Origin: Cyanophora paradoxa CCMP329
Lineage: Eukaryota > Plantae > Glaucophyta
Assembly: GCA_004431415.1 (NCBI GenBank)
Contig: QPMI01000409.1
Coordinates: 1 to 64,000, forward strand
Reading direction: 5' to 3'
Length of the DNA stretch: 64,000 nucleotides
The translations under genes and the position numbers were made by a program. The notes below the pieces were generated by a model. It was not told the DNA's origin. It saw only the letters and a program-made list of their open reading frames with translations, and did no database searches. Positions 19,338 through 63,607 of the stretch are shown piece after piece (position 1 is the stretch's first letter; every line of letters begins with the position of its first letter).

Positions 19338-19578
19338 AAAATGGGCGCGAGGAGGGCCGCTGAGGCTTCGCCCGACCTTTGGGACCCGCAGGGGCCCAGG
19401 GCTTGACTTAGTAATTTCAATTTTGATTTCAATTTTGATTTCGGAGCTCGAGTTCACGCGTACTACGGTACGTTAAATCGTGATCGCAACTGCAACAGGG
19501 CCCCGCCGGGCGCCGGGCCGCCCAGCGCCGGATCCGATAGCGCTAGCGAGCTCTATGTGACGATATTGATGAGATGGG

Positions 19579-19631
19579 GTACATCGTATACAACCCCGAA
19601 TTCGTGCCCCCGGGGCTTGTATACGATGTAC
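19579..19631. other. Near-perfect DNA/RNA hairpin at the left edge of Fanzor-like copy 1
   Basis: gtacatcgtatacaa-ccccg (19579-19598) pairs with cgggg-c-ttgtatacgatgtac (19611-19631). Confidence 0.85.
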
Positions 19632-19639
19632 TTGCAATT

Positions 19640-20091
19640 TCAGACACGTGCGGCAAGATCAACTACGGGCTCGGCTCGAAGAGGGTCTTCGAGTGCCGCC
19701 CCGGGTGCGGCTTCCGGGCGGACCGCGACGGCGGCGCCGCGCGGTGCGTGTTGTGTCTATACACGCCTATACACAATCGCTGCTCCCCCGCCTAGTCCCG
19801 ACACGGCCTAGCCACGGCATAATTTTCCGTCTAGGCCTAGGGCCGGCTCGCCCTCCCAGCGCCGCCCGATCGCAATCGTAATCGTACTCTTGCAGGAGCA
19901 TCTTCATCCGCTACGGCACCGGCGTGGACGCGAAGCGCCTGCTCGGTTCGTAGCCAGCTAGCGCTAGGCTCCGATCCCCTTTTCTCCATCAGGGCACCAG
20001 TCCCTGCGGGTTACGCTCTCACCCAAACAGCACGGGTACAGTTAAAGCGCTGTAGGTAGGAGGTCCGGCGCGCCCGTAGCGTAGAAAGAGC
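19640..20091 (+). mobile_element. TnpB/Fanzor-derived non-autonomous element, copy 1 (C-terminal ORF remnant plus putative omegaRNA end)
   Basis: Translates to TCGKINYGLGSKRVFECRPGCGFRADRDGGAARCVL, matching the TnpB/Fanzor zinc ribbon and RuvC-III DRDxxxAxxI motif; ends ...gtagcgtagaaagagc like the other copies. Confidence 0.75.
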
Positions 20092-20428
20092 TCAAGAACT
20101 CAGCCCACGGCAGCGCTAGCTATTGTTTCTCGTGCTGCTAATCGTATTTTTGTTGGTGGTTCTCCTATTAGTTATTTAGAACGTCCACAATCAGGAATTG
20201 ACGCAAAAGCTAGCTAGATCGAGGTGCTCGATCGGTACCGCGTTCATCCAGTGCGCCCAGTTTCACGGATAAGCTGTTCAGCCCAGCGCAACCAGCGCCC
20301 CTGCCGGAGAGACCGCCGGCCTGTTGAACAACAGAATCATCGAGGCGCTCAGCTGCACTTCTGAGTGAACCGCGGTTGCGCTGTAGCAGCGGGCGGCCGC
20401 TGGGCGCTGCGGCAGCGAGCACGCGATC

Positions 20429-23400
20429 ATGGGCCCTGAGGACATGAGCGCGGATGATCTGGCAGCGCCGATCAAGGATACGGCAGTGCGCATTCGTCAG
20501 ACCGCATGAACTGCACGTACGGGCAAGAGCGCCGCTCACGCTTCGCGCAGGAGAAGTGGCGGCTGCTCCCTTCGTTCCTGCGCGTGCGAGGCCTCGTGAA
20601 GCAGCACATCGATTCTTTCAACTATTTCACGAGCGTCGAAATAAAGAAGATCGTGCAGGCGAACCAGCGCGTCACATCGGATGCGGACCCTACCTTTTTC
20701 CTCGAGTGCGCCCACCACAGTTGACGCGCTCAATGCACAAAGCCCTTTTGACGCTTGTTCAGGTACACAAATATCAGCATCGGCAAGCCTAGTGTCGAGG
20801 AGGACCTGATCGTCACAGCTATCGCGCCACACGAATGCAGACTGCGGGTGCGGGGATAATTGCGCGCCATCGCAATGCGTGCGCTGTTTTGACCGTTATT
20901 ACCTCAGGATATGACGTATGCAGCACCCATAACAGTAGATGTCCGCTACACCCGCGGTAAGGAGATCGTCGTCAGGAAGGGTGTCGTTGTTGGACGCATG
21001 CCCATCATGTTACGGTCCTGCAACTGCGTTCTTACAGGCAAGTCGGAGGCCGAGCTGGCAAAGCTCAAAGAATGCCCTCTCGACCCAGGTGTGCATTATA
21101 AGTGCCTCTAGCTCGTCACAGTTGAATGCTGATTTTTTTCGCCCCGTTGACAGGCGGTTACTTTATTGTCAAGGGGACTGAACGTGTGATTCTCACCCAG
21201 GAGCAACTGTCGAAAAACAGAATCATCATAGAAGAGGACAGCAAAGGCAACATTCAGGCATCGGTGACAAGCTCGACCCATGAACGGAAGAGCAGGAGCC
21301 AAATTTATTCAAAGCATGGGAAGATGTACTTGAAGCACAACACGCTCACTGAAGACCTACCTGTAGTAATCGCAATGAAGGTATAGGACCTGTTTGTTGC
21401 TTGTCACATTGTTGGTAGGAACAGGCACTGATAGAACGTGTGGTCTGTCAGGCAATGGGAGTCGAGAGTGATCAGGAGATTGTCCAACTCGTCGGAAGTG
21501 AACCATTGTATGCAGACGCAATGTCTGCTTCGTTGGAGGACTGTTCATCCTCACGCATCTACACGAGAAATCAGGCACTCGATTACATTGCATCCCGCAT
21601 CAGAAGCTCTGGACCTCGGCGCTTCGGAGGACCTCGCCGCTCCAAAGTTGATGAAGCGCGCGAACTGCTTGCACAGGTCGTGCTAGCTCATGTCCCTGTC
21701 GAGAAGTTCAACTTCAGGCCGAAATGTATCTATGTCGCACTCATGCTCAGGCGTATCATCACCGCAATGAAGGACCCAACTGCCATTGATGACAAGGATT
21801 ACTACGGCAACAAGCGGCTTGAACTGTGCATCCTTATTTCTCTCGCCTGAACTTCCAGTAAATCTCATCCTTCCTCAGGTCTGGGCAGCTTATCGCACTC
21901 CTTTTTGAGGACTTGTTCAAGCGCTTCAACAGCGATTTGAAGCGGAATGCAGATCAGGTTCTCACGAAACAGAATCGTGCCCAGCAGTTCGACGTGGTGA
22001 AATGCATTCGCCCTGACACAATCACACATGGCTTGGAGCACGCCCTTTCAACTGGGAACTGGTCTGTTAAACGTTTTAAAATGGAGCGTTCGGGCGTGAC
22101 CCAGGTAAATTCGTTTCTTGCTTGCTGTGGTGTGCCTCCAATTCATTGGACCTGTGCAGGTGTTGTCTCGGCTCTCCTACATTGCGTGCTTGGGCATGAT
22201 GACGAGAATTACCAGCCAGTTTGAGAAGACAAGGAAGGTTGCTGGACCTCGCTCCCTGCAGGTACTTTCGAAACAACTTGTTTCTTAATAGCTTTGACTG
22301 TGTTGAGCAGGGTTCACACTGGGGCATGGTCTGCCCATCGGACACACCTGAAGGAGAAGCCTGTGGCCTGGTGAAGAATCTCGCCCTTACCACACATGTA
22401 ACAACGGATGATGAAGAAGGTCCAATCCTGCGCATGGCATTCAATCTTGGAACCGAGGGTGCTTTTCACCTGTGGGCTTTTCCTCGAGATTCGAGAGGCT
22501 CACCTGTTCTGGCAGATGTGAACACACTTTCTGGTGAGGAGCAGAACAGCCTATCATCCTACCTCGTCATTGTCAATGGTCTCGTGATTGGAGTGCATAG
22601 GCGCCCTGCAAACCTTGTCAAGTCTCTTCGTGCCATGAGAAGAAAGGGCTTACTTGGGGAGTTCGTTTCCATTTTCCAGCACGATCGGCATAGAACAGTG
22701 TACATAGCCTCAGATGGGGACGAGTGTGCAGGCCACTCATCATCGTGCGAAATGGGAAGTCCAGTGTGCTCCCTCGGCATATACAGGCAAGAAGCAATTG
22801 TCCATCAGCCCTTCGCAATCTTGCCTAACATCTGACTGTAAACGCAGGAAGCTGTTGATGGCTATCGCTCTATGCAAGACTTCTTGAAAGAGGGCCTCAT
22901 CGAGTACCTGGATGTGAACGAGGAGAATAATGTGGAGATCGCGATGTATGAAAAAGATATTGTCCCAGCAACAACGCATCTGGAGATCGAGCCTTTGACA
23001 ATTCTGGGCGTTGTAGCTGGTCTTATCCCCTACCCCCACCATAATCAGTCCCCTCGCAACACGTATGTAGCCAGCACTGCTTGAACACTCTGACTTGCTC
23101 ACATTTTTCTTGCAGGTACCAGTGTGCGATGGGCAAGCAGGCTATCGGCACTATCGCCTACAACCAAATGAATCGTCTTGACACATTGTTGTACCTGCTT
23201 GTCTACCCTCAGAAGCCCATGGTGAAGACAAGAACCATCGAGTTCATCAACTTCAACAAGGTGATAAGAAAAAATTCTAGCAATTTTCAGCAAGTTGACT
23301 TCCGTCTTGAACAGCTGGGTGCTGGTCAAAATGCCACGGTGTTCATCATGAGCTACTCCGGCTACGATATTGAGGATGCGACAATGATGAACAAGGTATT

Positions 23401-25072: not shown

Positions 25073-25169
25073 GCTCTTTCTACGCTACGGGCGCGGCCGG
25101 ACCTCCTACCTACAGCGCTTTAACTGTACCCGTGCTGTTTGGGTGAGAGCATAACCCGCAGGGACTGGT
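25073..25169 (-). mobile_element. Fanzor-end element, copy 2 (terminal ~97 bp only)
   Basis: Reverse complement of the copy 1 3' end, beginning gctctttctacgctacggg; 171 bp after the RPC2 stop. Confidence 0.85.
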
Positions 25170-25176
25170 TCAGGGA

Positions 25177-25300
25177 CTGATTCTGATCGTAATCGCAACT
25201 CTGATTCTGATCGTAATCGCAACTCTGATTCTGATCGTAATCGCAACTCTGATTCCGATCGTAATCGCAACTCTGATTCTGATCGTAATCGCAACTCTGA
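25177..25300. repeat. 24-bp minisatellite (tctgattc[t/c]gatcgtaatcgcaac) x~5
   Basis: Tandem units seen directly; the same unit recurs at ~29980, ~35227-35311 and ~35828-35996. Confidence 0.95.
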
Positions 25301-25982
25301 TCCCAATGCTCACCCAAACGTAAAATCGCTCTCAAAAACGGTTGCTAATATGCAGCTAGCTAGTAAATAACGAGGACAAAAGCCCAGACGAGACAAGGTT
25401 TTCGCTTTCTGGCACAGGGGCCATAAAGTTCACGAGCTTTTCTTGTACCTCGTACCTGCAATAAGAAATCAGGGTAGTGTTGTGCATGACGAGAATGCGT
25501 GTCAGGCACCTCAGTTTGCGACCCTTGCTTGAGTTTGCGACCCTGTGCAGCGCGTGAGGCGGGCGGGGCCGCCGGGGAGGAGGAGGAAGCCGGTGCCGCA
25601 GGCGGCGGCCTGGCAGGCGTCGAGGGCGGCCTCCTCGCCCCGCCAGCGGCCCGGGGCCCCGGGCTCGGGCCCCGGTTCATGCTAGGCTAGGCAGAAGTCG
25701 CCCCTAGGCCTGCAGATTACGATCGCGATTAGCTATAGGGGTTGGGCGACAGTGAAGGTTGGAAGTCTTTGATTTCCGTGCACGTGGCATGCGCATGCGC
25801 ACCAGGCACCTTCAGGTGGGGCTACCGGATACTTCGTTCTCCCAGCTCTCAAATACCGGATACTACGGTGGCACCGCGGCAACTCCCAGCTCTCTCTCTC
25901 TCTCTCTCTCTCTCCCTCCCAGCTCTAGCGATCTAGAATTGATCAGGCAGGAAAGGGCGCCGCTGGCTCGAAAGACCGCGCC

Positions 25983-26831: not shown

Positions 26832-27246
26832 GCTCTTTCTACGCTACGGGCGCGGCCGGACCTCCTACCTCAGCGCTTTAACTGTACCCGTGCTGTTTGG
26901 GTGAGAGCGTAACCCGCAGGGACTGGTGCCCTGATGGAGAAAAGCCTTGAAGGGGATCGGAGCCTAGCGCTAGCTGGCTACGAACCGAGCAGGCGCTTCG
27001 CGTCCACGCCGGTGCCGTAGCGGATGAAGATGCTCCTGCAAGAGTACGATTACGATTGCGATCGGGCGGCGCTGGGAGGGGCGAGCCGGCCCTAGGCCTA
27101 GACGGAAAATTATGCCGTGGCTAGGCCGTGTCGGGACTAGGCGGGGGGAGCAGCGATTGTGTATAGGCGTGTATAGACACAACACGCACCGCGCGGCGCC
27201 GCCGTCGCGGTCCGCCCGGAAGCCGCACCCGGGGCGGCACTCGAAG
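26832..27246 (-). mobile_element. Fanzor-end element, copy 3 (~415 bp, includes FECRPGCGFRADRD codons)
   Basis: Near-identical reverse complement of ~19687-20091; starts 27 bp after the SmpB stop. Confidence 0.88.
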
Positions 27247-27799
27247 CCGCACCCGGGGCGGCACCCGGGGACGTGCGAGAATATTTTTAAACGTTTACGT
27301 ATAAGTATACGATTTGGGTAAAACGGAGTCGGCGATGGCAGAGGGGCGCCCGGCGCCCGGCAGACTAGACGGGGCCGGGTGGGGACCAGCAGCGCATGCA
27401 GGGGTATATGGGTAGGGCGAGTTAAAATAAACGTTCAAAGTTGCAATTAATAATTGGCTATTTGCTTTAATTTCGATTCTGATTACGTATATATACGTAT
27501 ACGCGCACGTACGATTATCGATATCGCTTTGGGTTGCAATTGACCATGCATATGAAAGGGGGGTTGGTTTTCACCGCGTACCCCGGGAGTCTGCCGCCCG
27601 GCAGCCGCCGTCCGCGCTTAGCACTTAGCTGCCGCCGTCCGCGCGAGCCGCTCACGGTTTGTTTCGACGCATTACGTCTGAGCCGACTTGCGGACGCAAG
27701 TTCTGCCTTGCTCTGCTGGCAAGCTGCGAGTATCTGGAATAGCGCGCCAATCCTTAGCTAAGTCCTGGTCTGAGCGCGTGAGGCCTGCGCTCGCGGAGT

Positions 27800-30780: not shown

Positions 30781-31305
30781 GGGAAATCGCTCAGGTCCAG
30801 CGCGTCACCGCGCGGAGCTCGCTCCGGGCTCGCGAACCCTCCAGGGTGCTCTAGCGCGCCCTGAGCAGAGGACGCCGGCGCGGGCATGTCCCATGAGCTC
30901 TCCGGGCGCTCCCCAGGGCGCGCCGGCCTGTCCCAGGCGCCTGTTGGTCTGTCGTCGCGCCGGCCGGCGGACCGGCTCCCGAAACGGGATCAGCGATCCT
31001 CCCGATTGAAGCGCCGACCGCCTGCCCCCTCCTCCCGACTCTGGAAGCGCGATCGGCCTTCGCCGCCCCGCTCATAGCGTGAGCCGCGCTCCTCCCGATC
31101 GAAGCGCCGGCCGCCTGCCCCCTCCTCCCGACTCTGGAAGCGCGATCGGCCTTCGCCACCCCGCTCATAGCGCGAGCCGTATGCACGTAGTGTGTGCTGT
31201 ACATGTACCCGTAGACGCGTGTCACAGGCCGAGTTTGTTCAATTGCAGACGTGCACTCCGGCGTCGCGATGACGAACTCACCCGCGCTCGCGCTCACTGT
31301 TGAGG
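30781..31305. pseudogene. Chimeric patchwork of copied fragments (S4-gene exon, NPL4 upstream region, local 30441 segment, QTRT1 5' end)
   Basis: 30781-31178 = revcomp of ~44617-45015; 31175-31247 = revcomp of 235-300; 31245-31265 = 30440-30460; 31265-31305 resembles 31801-31841. Confidence 0.9.
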
Positions 31306-31804: not shown

Positions 31805-33558
<1,754 letters not shown>

Positions 33559-34912: not shown

Positions 34913-35207
34913 GCTCTTTCTACGCTACGGGCGCGCCGGACCTCCTACCTACAGCGCTTTAACTGATTACCCGTGCTGTTTGGGTGAGAGCGTAACCCGC
35001 AGGGACTGGTGCCCTGATGGAGAAAAGGGGATCGGAGCCTAGCGCTAGCTGGCTACGAGCCGAGCAGGGCCGTTTCCCGCAGTCGCCGATTTGTATGGGA
35101 GCGGGCTTATGTAAGGCTTACCATCATACTTTGGCCATCATAGTTTTTTCCCCCAGCTAATTTTCACTACGTAGCTGGCGACTGCGGGAAACGGCCCAGG
35201 CGCTTCG
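34913..35207 (-). mobile_element. Fanzor-end element, copy 4 (interrupted by a MITE)
   Basis: Starts gctctttctacgctacggg and continues to cgcttcg after removing 35068-35199. Confidence 0.85.
35068..35196. mobile_element. MITE A, PIF/Harbinger-like (20-bp TIRs, CAG target-site duplication)
   Basis: TIR ggccgtttcccgcagtcgcc / ggcgactgcgggaaacggcc; cag at 35065-67 and 35197-99; uninterrupted copies read ...gagcaggcgc. Confidence 0.9.
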
Positions 35208-35311
35208 TAATCGTTGGACGTCGACGTCGTAATCGCAACGTTAACTTAAGCTTAGTAACTCTGATTCCGATCGTAATCGCAACTCTGATTCCGATCGTAA
35301 TCGCAACTCTG

Positions 35312-35827
35312 GACGGTTTTTCGCTGTCGCCAATTTGTATGGCGGCCTTACGATCGGAGGCTTACGATCGGCCTTACGAATAATTCTCGAGAGTGACATC
35401 ACCATCATGACGTGGGCTTAATTCTGTAAGCAAATTTTAACCTCGTAAGCTTACAGCCGGGAGCGAGTTTTGCCAAATTCACTCCCGCGCGTAAGGCTAG
35501 GAGCTAGCGCTGTAGCCTACGTCTGTAAGCTGGTGCTGGCGGCGCTCGGGTTTGCCGAGGGCGTTGATGCGCCAAAGTGTGCGCGCATGCATACGCAGCG
35601 CCGTACAGCCTTGCCGAGCTGCTTCAGCACGCTAGAGCGGCGTTTGACGCTACGGCGCTGCCCTCAACGGTCACTTAGGGGGTACCGTTACCGCCGCGCT
35701 AAGACTCGACTGGGCTCGTCCACGCCCAAGATTTCACGGCGACGACGCCTTACTGCAGGAAATGACATCATAGTTTTTTCCAGCGTTAATTTCCGCTCCG
35801 TGCGTAAGCCGACAGCGAAAAACCGTC
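35312..35827. mobile_element. MITE B, related to MITE A (18-bp TIRs), inserted in the 24-bp minisatellite
   Basis: TIR gacggtttttcgctgtcg / cgacagcgaaaaaccgtc; flanks ctg / atg; shares atttgtatgg and catcatagttttttcc with MITE A. Confidence 0.85.
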
Positions 35828-35996
35828 ATGATTCCGATCGTAATCGCAACTCTGATTGCGATCGTAATCGCAACTCTGATTCCGATCGTAATCGCAACTC
35901 TGATTGCGATCGTAATCGCAACTCTGATTCCGATCGTAATCGCAACTCTGATTCCGATCGCAACGTTAACTCTGATTCCGATCGTAATCGCAACTC
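35828..35996. repeat. 24-bp minisatellite x~7
   Basis: tctgatt(c/g)cgatcgtaatcgcaac tandem. Confidence 0.95.
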
Positions 35997-36018
35997 TTTC
36001 GAAATTTCGAATTTCGCT

Positions 36019-36201
36019 CAATAGGAGGTATCTCCGGAGGAGAGGAGAAAAGCTTGACATGGCAGGTGCTCACGGATACTGGATTTTCTTCATGCTCTTG
36101 TTTCACACATGCTGTTCTAGGTCGTGGATCAGTGCACAGCTCTACTGCCTGAGAATAAGGTTCCCGGGCACCACTGATTTTTTTCTTACTATTTCACCAA
36201 C
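36019..36201 (+). pseudogene. Duplicated internal QTRT1 fragment (exon-intron-exon-intron)
   Basis: Near-identical to ~32844-33027 including introns, with a few substitutions. Confidence 0.9.
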
Positions 36202-39342: not shown

Positions 39343-39519
39343 GCTCTTTCTACGCTACGGGCGCGCCGGACCTCCTACCTACAGCGCTTTAACTGTACCC
39401 GTGCTGTTTGGGTGAGAGCGTAACCCGCAGGGACTGGTGCCCTGATGGAGAAAAGGGGATCGGAGCCTAGCGCTAGCTGGCTACGAGCCGAGCAGGCGCT
39501 TCGCGTCCACGCCGGTGCC
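39343..39519 (-). mobile_element. Fanzor-end element, copy 5 (~177 bp)
   Basis: Same terminus; 56 bp after the CEP41 stop. Confidence 0.88.
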
Positions 39520-44173: not shown

Positions 44174-45558
44174 ATGGATTCCGCGTTTTGCGTGCTAGGG
44201 GCAGCGCCAGCGGCGGTCTTGACCTACCTTCGGCCCCACCGCCGAGATGCTGCGTGCTGTCCCACCGGTACCGCCGAGACGCAGCACCAGCGCGCTGTCG
44301 CTAGCTGGAGCAAGCCGAGCACGCGCGATCAGGGCCCCGGGGGCCGGCGGACCGGGGGCGATCAGCGCGGCCCTTGGCGCTCAGGTGGGCAGCAGCGCTC
44401 GAGCGAAGGTCGCCAGCGCTTCAGCCGTGACGAAAGCGGCTTCCCGCGGCGCTCCGAGCGGGACGGAGGACGCGGATCACGCGGGGAGGAGAGCGGAGGT
44501 CGGCGCTTCGATCGGGAGGAGCGCGGCTCGCGCTATGAGCGGGGCGGCGAAGGCCGATCGCGCTTCCAGAGTCGGGAGGAGGGGGCAGGCGGCCGGCGCT
44601 TCGATCGGGAGGAGCGCGGATCGCGCTATGAGCGGGGCGGCGAAGGCCGATCGCGCTTCCAGAGTCGGGAGGAGGGGGCAGGCGGCCGGCGCTTCGATCG
44701 GGAGGAGCGCGGCTCGCGCTATGAGCGGGGCGGCGAAGGCCGATCGCGCTTCCAGAGTCGGGAGGAGGGGGCAGGCGGTCGGCGCTTCAATCGGGAGGAT
44801 CGCGGATCCCGTTTCGGGAGCCGGTCCGCCGGCCGGCGCGACGACAGACCAACAGGCGCCTGGGACAGGCCGGCGCGCCCTGGGGAGCGCCCGGAGAGCT
44901 CATGGGACATGCCCGCGCCGGCGTCCTCTGCTCAGGGCGCGCTAGAGCGCCCTGGAGGGTTCGCGAGCCCGGAGCGAGCTCCGCGCGGTGACGCGCTGGA
45001 CCTGAGCGATTTCCCTGCCGGTGTCGTGGAGTACACGAGCTCGGCCCCCTCCGAACGCAGCGGAAAGCTGGTCAACGCGCTCTCCAAGGCCCAGATCGGA
45101 AGGTGCACTTCGCTGACGATGTTTCCAAGCAAGCCATGACGCCCTGCGCTTGCTTGCATACGCAGTATGGAAGTTGTGGAACTTCTTGTCGCAAAAGGGC
45201 GCGTGCACGTGAACGGATCGCCTGTCACTGACACGGCTGCCATCGTGGAAGTGACTGATCGCATTGTGCGCGGATGTGCCCTCGATCCTTCACGTGTACA
45301 CGCTTAGACTTGCAAAGGTGGTGAACGGCGAGTTCCTAGAGCCGGAGAGGGACGAGCCCGATAACGATGACGAGGATTACGACGACGCGGACGACTGGGA
45401 CCCTCGAAAGTGCGGTTTCTTCCCGTTCGCCTGCACTGTGGAGGACCGACTGACACGGTCTTCTCTGCCCCCATGCAGCCGCGGGAAGCTTCCGAAGGAG
45501 TACTCGTCAAGCATCGATGGGGGCTTCTTCAAGCGGAAGCTCATGGAGGTCAAGAACG
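44174..45558 (+). CDS. Organelle-targeted S4-like RNA-binding protein with RGG/RE-rich repeats
   Basis: MDSAFCVLGAAPA transit-like start; 93-bp repeat; S4-like KLVNALSKAQIG..VAKGRVHVNGSPVTD..VTDRIVVNG. Confidence 0.6.
44495..44810 (+). repeat. 93-bp (31-aa) coding tandem repeat x~3.4
   Basis: GGRRFDREERGSRYERGGEGRSRFQSREEGA repeated at 44495, 44588, 44681, partial at 44774. Confidence 0.95.
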
Positions 45559-45665: not shown

Positions 45666-45838
45666 GCTCTTTCTACTAGGCTATGTGACGGGCGCGCGGG
45701 ACACTTCTAGATCTAGACCTTCAGCGCTTGAACTATATATAGCCGTGCTGTTCGGGATGAGAGCGTAACCCGCAGGAGCCCCGAGCCTCGGAGGCCCGAG
45801 GGGCCCTGTCTGATGGAAAAATGGGGGAGCCTAGCTAG
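45666..45838 (-). mobile_element. Fanzor-end element, copy 7 (diverged)
   Basis: Keeps gctctttcta, acgggcgcg, cagcgctt, ccgtgctgtt, gagagcgtaacccgcagg, ctgatgga and gagcctagc in order, with indels; 107 bp after the S4-gene stop. Confidence 0.75.
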
Positions 45839-46081
45839 CTGCAGAGAGTCGCGTCGGCGCCCACCCCCGTAATCGTAATTCTCAAATTCTTTTCATTTTC
45901 AAGTTTTAGGACTCAGCCACCTAGTACCACGCAGAAAAAGGGTGCTACAAACTAATAGAGATCTATCAGCTAAAATGGTACACATGCAGGGCGGATCCGG
46001 ACAGTGAAAGGGTTCAAGAAAGACTGCCGATCGGAATGGGGCGGCGGGAAGGGGCAGAGCAGAGGCGGGTCATGATCTTGA

Positions 46082-62897: not shown

Positions 62898-63238
62898 GCT
62901 CTTTCTACGCTACGGGCGCGGCCGGACCTCCTACCTCAGCGCTTTAACTGTACCCGTGCTGTTTGGGTGAGAGCGTAACCCGCAGGGACTGGTGCCCTGA
63001 TGGAGAAAAGGGGATCGGAGCCTAGCGCTAGCTGGCTACGAACCGAGCAGGCGCTTCGCATCCACGCCTGTGCCGTAGCGGATGAAGATGCTCCTGCGAG
63101 TACGATTACGATTGCGATCGGGCGGCGCTGGGAGGGGCGAGCCGGCCCTAGGCCTAGACGGAAAATTATGCCGTGGCTAGGCCGTGTCGGGACTAGGCGG
63201 GGGGAGCAGCGATTGTGTATAGGCGTGTATAGACACAA
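62898..63238 (-). mobile_element. Fanzor-end element, copy 6 (~341 bp)
   Basis: Same terminus, near-identical to copy 3; 35 bp after the CFAP53 stop. Confidence 0.88.
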
Positions 63239-63316: not shown

Positions 63317-63334
63317 TTAGGGTTAGGGTTAGGG
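63317..63334 (+). repeat. Interstitial (TTAGGG)3
   Basis: ttagggttagggttaggg seen directly, followed by G-run repeats to ~63508. Confidence 0.7.
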
Positions 63335-63607
63335 TACACACAGATGGACACCTCATTTCTATCTCTAGCCATTTGTCTCGGTGTGTGCGAATTCATTATC
63401 TTCAAGTTGGGGTCTGCTGCTGGCCCAGTGCTGTGGGGGGCGGGGGGCGGGGGGGGGGGGGGGGGGGGGGGGTGTCTGCTGCTGGCCCAGTGCTGGGGGG
63501 GGGGGGGAAGAAGTTGCTCAACCAGAGCGAGTTCGCGCGCGCGAGAGTAGCTATAGCTAGTAGCTATAGGCAATCTCCGATAGCTCGTACCAATCTCCCT
63601 CCTATAC

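Follow-up and report, generated by a model that had tools for sequence, protein, structure and literature searches.

Truncated right ends of an intron-containing TnpB/Fanzor family in the glaucophyte Cyanophora paradoxa: a probable case of one-ended copying

Results

Seven copies with a common right end

The analyzed window is a 64-kb stretch of GC-rich, intron-bearing eukaryotic DNA from Cyanophora paradoxa, in which the following copies of a repeated sequence were delineated.

About 19644 to 20091, plus strand (c19640): longest copy; family homology begins at 19642-19649 (BLASTN, MAFFT)
25073 to 25169, minus strand (c25073): 97 nt; 3' end directed toward that of the RPC2 gene
26832 to 27246, minus strand (c26832): ~415 nt; contains the intron and remnants of both exons, with a 24-nt stutter duplication reaching ~27270
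34913 to 35206, minus strand (c34913): ~160 nt of element, into which a 129-bp MITE (35068-35196) is inserted
39343 to 39519, minus strand (c39343): 177 nt; 99% identical to c19640
45666 to 45868, minus strand (c45666): diverged copy from a second Fanzor family
62898 to 63238, minus strand (c62898): 341 nt; begins inside the intron

The exact 22-mer GCGCCCGTAGCGTAGAAAGAGC occurs six times in the window, at 20070-20091 on the plus strand and at 25073, 26832, 34913, 39343, and 62898 on the minus strand, against 0 occurrences expected from 100 shuffles. BLASTN and MAFFT alignments group six copies into a main family with 97 to 99% identity, whose members retain about 448, 415, 341, 177, 160, and 97 nt, while the seventh copy (~203 nt) is only ~74% identical. 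All seven share the right end ...AAAGAGC and stop at the same base. The next base is an A in 6/7 copies (chance ~0.001 at a base frequency of ~0.25), the flanks starting with AAT (twice), ATT (twice), ACT, AAA, and, at c19640, TCA; beyond this +1 position, the aligned flanks are unrelated between copies.

The 22-mer count, BLASTN, and MAFFT thus agree with the preliminary description of this DNA, which had reported seven copies with a common right end followed by unrelated flank, and the alignment likewise bears out the A after the right end in six of them, the AAT/ATT/ACT starts in five, and the other ends stopping at different points (97 to about 450 nt kept). Its coordinates were right to within a few bases, except that the diverged copy extends to 45868 and not 45838. 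Its statement that poly-A, TIR, and TSD were lacking stands for the first two, neither of which was found at any of the seven copies, but not for the third, as c62898 has a flanking direct repeat (see below).

The diverged copy retains the last ~10 codons in frame, with a stop at the same place as in the main family, and its tail contains the same conserved blocks together with six insertions. The last exon of c62898 carries two changes, both synonymous. Altogether, six tails are one young family with two sub-lineages, and the seventh belongs to a second, older family. The MITE within the c34913 tail is bounded by 20-bp TIRs without mismatch (GGCCGTTTCCCGCAGTCGCC) and by a duplicated CTG; the satellite adjoining this copy contains a related element of ~520 bp (35312-35830), whose TIRs are similar (GACGGTTTTTCGCTGTCG...).

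Gene anatomy of the longest copy

The longest copy contains the end of a gene, followed by a noncoding tail, arranged as follows.

19644..19743, plus strand: remnant of the penultimate Fanzor exon, with zinc ribbon and RuvC-III, ...TCGKINYGLGSKRVFECRPGCGFRADRDGGAA-R (translation; Pfam PF07282)
19744..19895, plus strand: Fanzor gene intron, GT..AG, with the spliced joint in RNA contigs
19896..19953, plus strand: last exon, (R)SIFIRYGTGVDAKRLLGS, with the stop codon TAG at 19951-19953
19954..20091, plus strand: noncoding tail of 138 nt, with the fixed right end ...TAGAAAGAGC

Translation gave the same peptide as the one first read from this copy in the preliminary description. The copy is cut inside the TSKTCxxC motif, with loss of the first Cys pair, and contigs of other copies run on upstream of 19648, in both DNA and RNA, as ...EAWTSKTCGV/CGKIN (the slash marking the cut). 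The 'tttcag' that precedes 19644 was considered as an intron acceptor and rejected, because other copies continue there without an intron.

The intron predicted from the sequence beforehand was recovered as an RNA joint, 19742>19895 (skipping 152 nt, GT..AG), in three RNA runs, and this joint was absent from the DNA run. In the alignment, every copy that reaches far enough to include the intron has retained it (c19640, c26832, and c62898). The two exons of c19640 were searched and translated separately; their joined form is known from the database protein P0001, which corresponds to the spliced c19640 product and is identical to EukProt tig00020554_g10793 of Cyanophora paradoxa.

Relationship to TnpB and Fanzor proteins

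The 39-amino-acid fragment of c19640 matched the Pfam family Cas12f1-like_TNB (PF07282, former OrfB_Zn_ribbon) with an E value of 7e-5 and 23.3 bits, which falls below the gathering score of 26.3 bits, whereas its paralogues P0004, P0011, and P0014 reach 42 to 45 bits. By this score, the three paralogues belong to the family that is defined by the TnpB/Fanzor C-terminal motif [TS][TS]-x-x-C4 zinc ribbon-x(5,50)-RD, and the earlier assignment of the peptide to TnpB/Fanzor is thus upheld. A scan of the exon against 1.8 billion representative proteins returned four short Cyanophora gene models, whose clusters comprise 13 or more truncated models from elsewhere in the genome, starting at different points, together with one Cyanophora protein of 1,087 amino acids, P0014, the last 50 residues of which are 100% identical to the window copy. 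Three protein homologue searches, in which low-complexity words and clustering under a 121-amino-acid representative hide long copies, yielded only one further Cyanophora fragment. The ESM Atlas neighbours are TnpB-type clusters, and neither the 22-mer nor a gapped pattern of the conserved blocks had a match in metagenome scans.

The best match of P0014 among solved structures is the mimivirus Fanzor2 L79 (ApmFz2; PDB 9b0l, E value of 1.3e-5), over only ~125 residues that cover the RuvC-II glutamate, the zinc ribbon, and RuvC-III, with the aligned motifs ...VIAPEF... (E) and ...ADRDGGAAR... (D). The RuvC-I Asp was read only from the motif LVVIDPGVKT, outside the PDB and profile matches, and the N-terminal half of P0014 had no profile or PDB match. 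NCBIfam gave weak TnpB matches (guided_TnpB, E value of 2.8e-4; IS607_TnpB, E value of 0.007), and an AlphaFold2 single-sequence model of residues 440 to 1087 was unusable (pLDDT 45). A Pfam scan detected no reverse transcriptase in P0014 or in the 10 largest ORFs of the window. Hence, regarding a possible LINE reverse transcriptase parent, raised in the preliminary description, the longer copies were found to continue into a Fanzor-like ORF and not into a reverse transcriptase. Judged from these sequence matches, the tails of the window derive from an intron-containing TnpB/Fanzor gene.

Excess of 3' ends

A tblastn search with P0014 against the 64-kb window found tails only and no upstream Fanzor fragment. 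Summed contig depth in the DNA run, a rough measure, amounted to ~14331 over the tail, 2672 over 19640-19829, and 284 upstream, against 148 for single-copy DNA, i.e., a gradient from the tail to upstream sequence of ~100x, 18x, and 2x single-copy depth. This indicates that the genome holds on the order of 100 tails with a steep 3'-to-5' gradient. As both the lack of upstream fragments in the window and the drop in DNA depth attest, the excess of 3' ends is genuine and no detection artefact.

With a C. paradoxa genome size that we take to be ~100 Mb, 7 tails in 64 kb versus ~100 per genome represent a roughly 100-fold local enrichment, and 6/7 point the same way. Three further tail models (g24195, g24202, and g24215) form another cluster, around the long copy on tig00000342.

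RNA across the right boundary

The RNA evidence consists of assembled contigs, which cannot reveal discrete small RNAs. RNA is continuous over the boundaries of both c19640 and c25073. The gene downstream of c19640 is RPC2 (plus strand; Pfam RNA_pol_Rpb2_6; start codon at 20429), whose spliced mRNA was recovered as a 3.9-kb contig from 20062 to 25101; the contig reaches 30 nt into c19640 and 29 nt into c25073, in each case exactly k-1 within the repeat. The Fanzor-sense RNA at c19640 is therefore the RPC2 5' UTR, over at least 367 nt, and further RNA contigs extend over 255 nt beyond GAGC, into different flanks. Fanzor-sense RNA does cross the GAGC boundary, as anticipated in the preliminary description, but it appears as long read-through (>255 nt; RPC2 5' UTR). 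The tails are mostly transcribed passively, e.g., within the RPC2 5' UTR.

RPC2 itself has about 20 short introns (47 to 71 nt) and lies between two tails, both with the fixed end directed toward the gene. Within its 5' UTR, 26 bp past the right end of c19640, lies a 91-bp segment (20118-20208; 37% GC) whose DNA depth is ~10x that of single-copy sequence and which other contigs continue with AT-rich sequence; it has one open frame and no Pfam match and may have come from an organelle or represent another repeat.

A conserved terminal module

In the terminal 88 nt (20004-20091), 81/88 positions are conserved between the two families, compared with 59% in the last 11 codons and 55% in the first part of the tail. 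Being more conserved than both the coding end and the early tail, the terminal module is, by this comparison of two families, under constraint. Even the shortest copy (97 nt) keeps the whole 88-nt block. By analogy with known systems, the terminal ~88 nt should hold the right-end signal and the omegaRNA scaffold, and the constraint could equally well fit a transposase right-end signal or a functional RNA.

RNAalifold predicted a helix, GCUCU:AGAGC, which closes the module exactly at the boundary; its pairing is invariant and thus uninformative on covariation. No compensatory base pair was found between the tails of the two families, the folding energy of the tails was no lower than that of shuffles (z from -0.7 to +0.3), and Rfam returned only chance-level matches on the tail. 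The 'structured' 3' end announced in the preliminary description is not confirmed by these folding scores, nor by the search for compensatory pairs. The RNA pseudoknot of TnpB and Fanzor2 uses positions -4..0, and the omegaRNA scaffold of ApmFz2 is ~205 nt long, with an essential pseudoknot strand at its far 5' end (PMC11832414). If the C. paradoxa family resembles ApmFz2, 4/7 copies (97, 160, 177, and ~203 nt) would be too short for such a scaffold.

Left junctions, direct repeats, and satellite

A direct repeat, AGCACTAGATCAT, lies on both sides of c62898; its 13 nt comprise the final 3 nt of the element, and a 7-nt filler separates it from the 5' junction, an arrangement matched in 0/300 shuffles. 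TSDs were sought within 1.5 kb upstream of each copy, and only that of c62898 was significant (1/7 copies), the candidate at c34913 being 9 nt long and 1.1 kb away (P of ~0.07). Left junctions display 0 to 2 nt of microhomology and 7 to 24 nt of filler or stutter duplication: the 5' junction of c25073 has a 12-nt stutter (CAGTCCCTGAAC/CAGTCCCTGCGG) of the element's own first retained bases, and at that of c26832, 24 nt of the element are duplicated in tandem (27219-27264). A shared 'AC' in the 5' junction flanks was examined as a TAM and dropped, as this AC is element-derived in several copies.

A 24-bp satellite, with the unit AGAGTTGCGATTACGATCAGAATC in tail orientation, occupies 25177-25301, 35257-35311, and 35829-35997, and both c25073 and c34913 are truncated directly against it on their 5' side; the 5' junction of c45666 (...GATTAC/GGGGG) displays only a satellite-like GATTAC motif. 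Elsewhere on the contig, the satellite is translated as IRIRVAITIGIRV just before the Fanzor part of the gene model P0003. The satellite orientation is the same in the three readable cases, and the truncation point is different each time. A reverse-oriented satellite-like unit is also present inside the Fanzor intron (19866-19888).

Discussion

We propose, with a probability of about 0.6, that the tails are dead, 5'-truncated right ends of a Fanzor family, generated by DNA-level, replicative transposition anchored at the right end ('one-ended' transposition). According to this model, copying would proceed at the DNA level in a replicative manner from the right end, which would be set precisely by the transposase of the element; synthesis would then abort at variable points, and the free end would be sealed by end joining. 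The model is based on the following: (i) the intron is spliced in RNA yet kept in the three long copies, so that the template was DNA or unspliced RNA, and (ii) the flanks are unrelated beyond +1, so that no parental flank was carried along, despite transcripts that run past GAGC. Together with the lack of an A-tail, these observations argue for DNA-level copying with an exact right end. Conversely, the satellite recurring at independent 5' junctions and the density of seven copies in 64 kb both count against one-ended transposition.

The one-ended pattern known from Helitron2, with 5' truncation, intact 3' ends, and variable TSDs, was recovered here, the TSD in 1/7 copies. Helitron hallmarks were looked for at the right end, where neither a strong subterminal hairpin (DNA folds of the last 70 nt, z of -0.76 and +0.09) nor a CTRR end was found, and the A in the flank of 6/7 copies does not correspond to the Helitron2 insertion at T^T. 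As for the unusual route that the preliminary description had deduced from the one-sided truncation, the truncation is real and points to a polar way of copying, but such a route is not unusual given the 2013 Chlamydomonas precedent discussed below.

RNA-templated, LINE-like target-primed copying of Fanzor transcripts is unlikely. The 5' truncation and, at c62898, a 10- to 13-bp TSD, the 7-nt filler, and a 3-nt microhomology (AGC) would suit such a process, tail RNA is abundant, and Fanzor1c has been reported beside LINEs (PMC10530073). The marks of a non-LTR retroposon are nevertheless lacking: the intron persists in the 3/3 copies that span it although it is spliced in RNA, no poly-A or simple-repeat tail was found, no copy carries parental flank beyond +1 although transcripts pass GAGC, and the Pfam scan of the Fanzor ORF (P0014) and of the 10 largest window ORFs contained no reverse transcriptase. 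An abortive repair process, in which synthesis from the right flank after excision or Fanzor cleavage would stall and be end-joined, leaving stumps at old insertion sites, appears quite improbable. The filler, the 12- and 24-nt stutters, and the 0- to 2-nt microhomology at the junctions speak for it, as does TnpB-driven homing through break repair, which is established in bacteria; it would leave the TSD of c62898 unaccounted for, however, gap repair usually retains both ends, and no full-length allele was found at these sites, the DNA run X2 containing the same truncated copies at two loci. We disfavour random decay of full-length insertions by deletions and insertions with no mechanistic polarity, which we regard as highly improbable: a MITE and satellites did invade some copies, but seven tails versus no upstream fragment in the window, the genome-wide depth gradient (~100x to 18x to 2x), and the youth of copies with 97 to 99% identity all oppose it.

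The preliminary description had favoured another scenario, namely, that truncated copies are kept as nuclease-less omegaRNA cassettes, each using its own 3' flank as a guide and loaded in trans by an intact Fanzor, to form a dispersed guide repertoire. As a variant, they would serve as nonautonomous homing units. Several observations are in line with this scenario, which we nonetheless consider very unlikely: the 88-nt block is conserved over two Fanzor families above the level of the coding end and is entire even in the 97-nt copy, the GCUCU:AGAGC closing helix at the boundary resembles the -4..0 pseudoknot (PMC11832414), sense RNA crosses the boundary, and a long paralogue (P0014) has E and D catalytic motifs. 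The folding energy is nevertheless like that of shuffles, with no compensatory pair, and the RNA past the boundary is long read-through (>255 nt), which at c19640 belongs to the 3.9-kb mRNA contig. Moreover, copies of 97 to 177 nt would be without the 5' pseudoknot strand if the family is like ApmFz2, a MITE interrupts c34913, no guide would match anything but its own flank, and copies that are 97 to 99% alike are too young to show selection. A related and even more doubtful hypothesis would be that the ~88-nt module is a minimal omegaRNA, still expressed by truncated copies and loaded in trans by a P0014-type Fanzor. If such a phenomenon exists, the tail-only copies would be nonautonomous, guide-only hitchhikers that use the nuclease for homing or retention at their own sites and would thus parasitize a eukaryotic RNA-guided nuclease in the manner of MITEs.

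One-ended transposition has its closest known counterpart in the CRe-1/2/3 elements of Chlamydomonas reinhardtii, which are nonautonomous Helitron2 elements carrying Fanzor1 (Bao & Jurka 2013, PMC3627910). These elements, present in tens to ~150 copies, have frequent 5' truncations, 3' ends that are nearly always intact ('3' overabundance'), variable TSDs (7 to 19 bp), and sometimes extra sequence at the 5' junction, a pattern interpreted as one-ended rolling-circle transposition (PMC3627910). The C. paradoxa family resembles them by an intron-containing Fanzor at the 3' side, 5' truncation, 3' integrity, and extra sequence at 5' junctions. It differs by its glaucophyte host, by a protein whose nearest solved relative is a Fanzor2, and by a right end without a Helitron-type hairpin, with an A instead of a T-rich flank and a TSD in 1/7 copies. 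One-sided truncation is thus already described for Chlamydomonas Fanzor elements, to which a glaucophyte case is added here.

The Fanzor2 group was initially associated with IS607-type elements. These are also known for a fixed nucleotide that follows the right end (PMC10711439), and ApmFz2 (PDB 9B0L), the best structural match to the C-terminal RuvC/zinc-ribbon part, comes from an IS607-type element; in contrast, neither a serine recombinase nor a TIR or GG target was seen in the window. MCi-2 of Mucor circinelloides has near-identical 3' regions and different or 'fuzzy' 5' regions, with 11- to 12-bp TSDs, no TIRs, and an uncertain transposase (PMC3627910), although its copies are long (6-kb shared 3' part) and few (11), unlike the C. 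paradoxa tails. The bacterial IS91 (cited in PMC3627910) couples one fixed and one variable end to replicative copying; the C. paradoxa family likewise has one end fixed and the other variable and would be copied replicatively, but no HUH enzyme is linked to it. C. reinhardtii has six CrFNuc genes, in addition to which 20 conserved copies of the guide RNA (fRNA, or omegaRNA) were reported (Jiang et al. 2023, PMC10530073). In both algae, guide-RNA regions of a Fanzor, putative ones in C. paradoxa, greatly outnumber the nuclease gene; the C. reinhardtii evidence is small-RNA-seq enrichment over the 3' UTR, and that from C. paradoxa assembled RNA contigs with read-through.

With these tails, a glaucophyte joins the algae with Fanzor right-end stumps, so that the one-ended pattern is not peculiar to Chlamydomonas Helitrons, and the family could help to show which step of Fanzor mobility produces the 3' bias. 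Knowledge of RNA-guided nucleases is unchanged by these tails, which turn up as spurious short gene models in the Cyanophora annotation and form part of host UTRs, e.g., that of RPC2.

Additional features near the tails

The ~100 bp upstream of c19640 (19545-19640) contain a 53-nt near-perfect hairpin (19579-19631; DNA fold z of -6.5), and this upstream sequence joined to the tail is present in ~2 copies in DNA. The c19640 junction peptide is also found fused to the AATF gene model P0016 on contig tig00020614. A transposed composite is one possible reading of the copy and its upstream hairpin; another is an element that lost internal sequence but has a 5' end of its own.

Two 399-bp inverted repeats (30781-31179 and 44617-45015; 99% complementary, 13.4 kb apart), each containing 93-bp tandem repeats, enclose c34913 and c39343 and may represent a large TIR element or an inverted duplication. 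A 183-bp direct duplication (32844-33026 and 36019-36201) is 98% identical, one duplicate lying immediately upstream of the satellite that precedes c34913. Finally, a telomere-like (CCCTAA)x3 and long poly-C tracts (63322-63339 and 63435-63510) lie ~90 to 270 bp upstream of the 5' junction of c62898.
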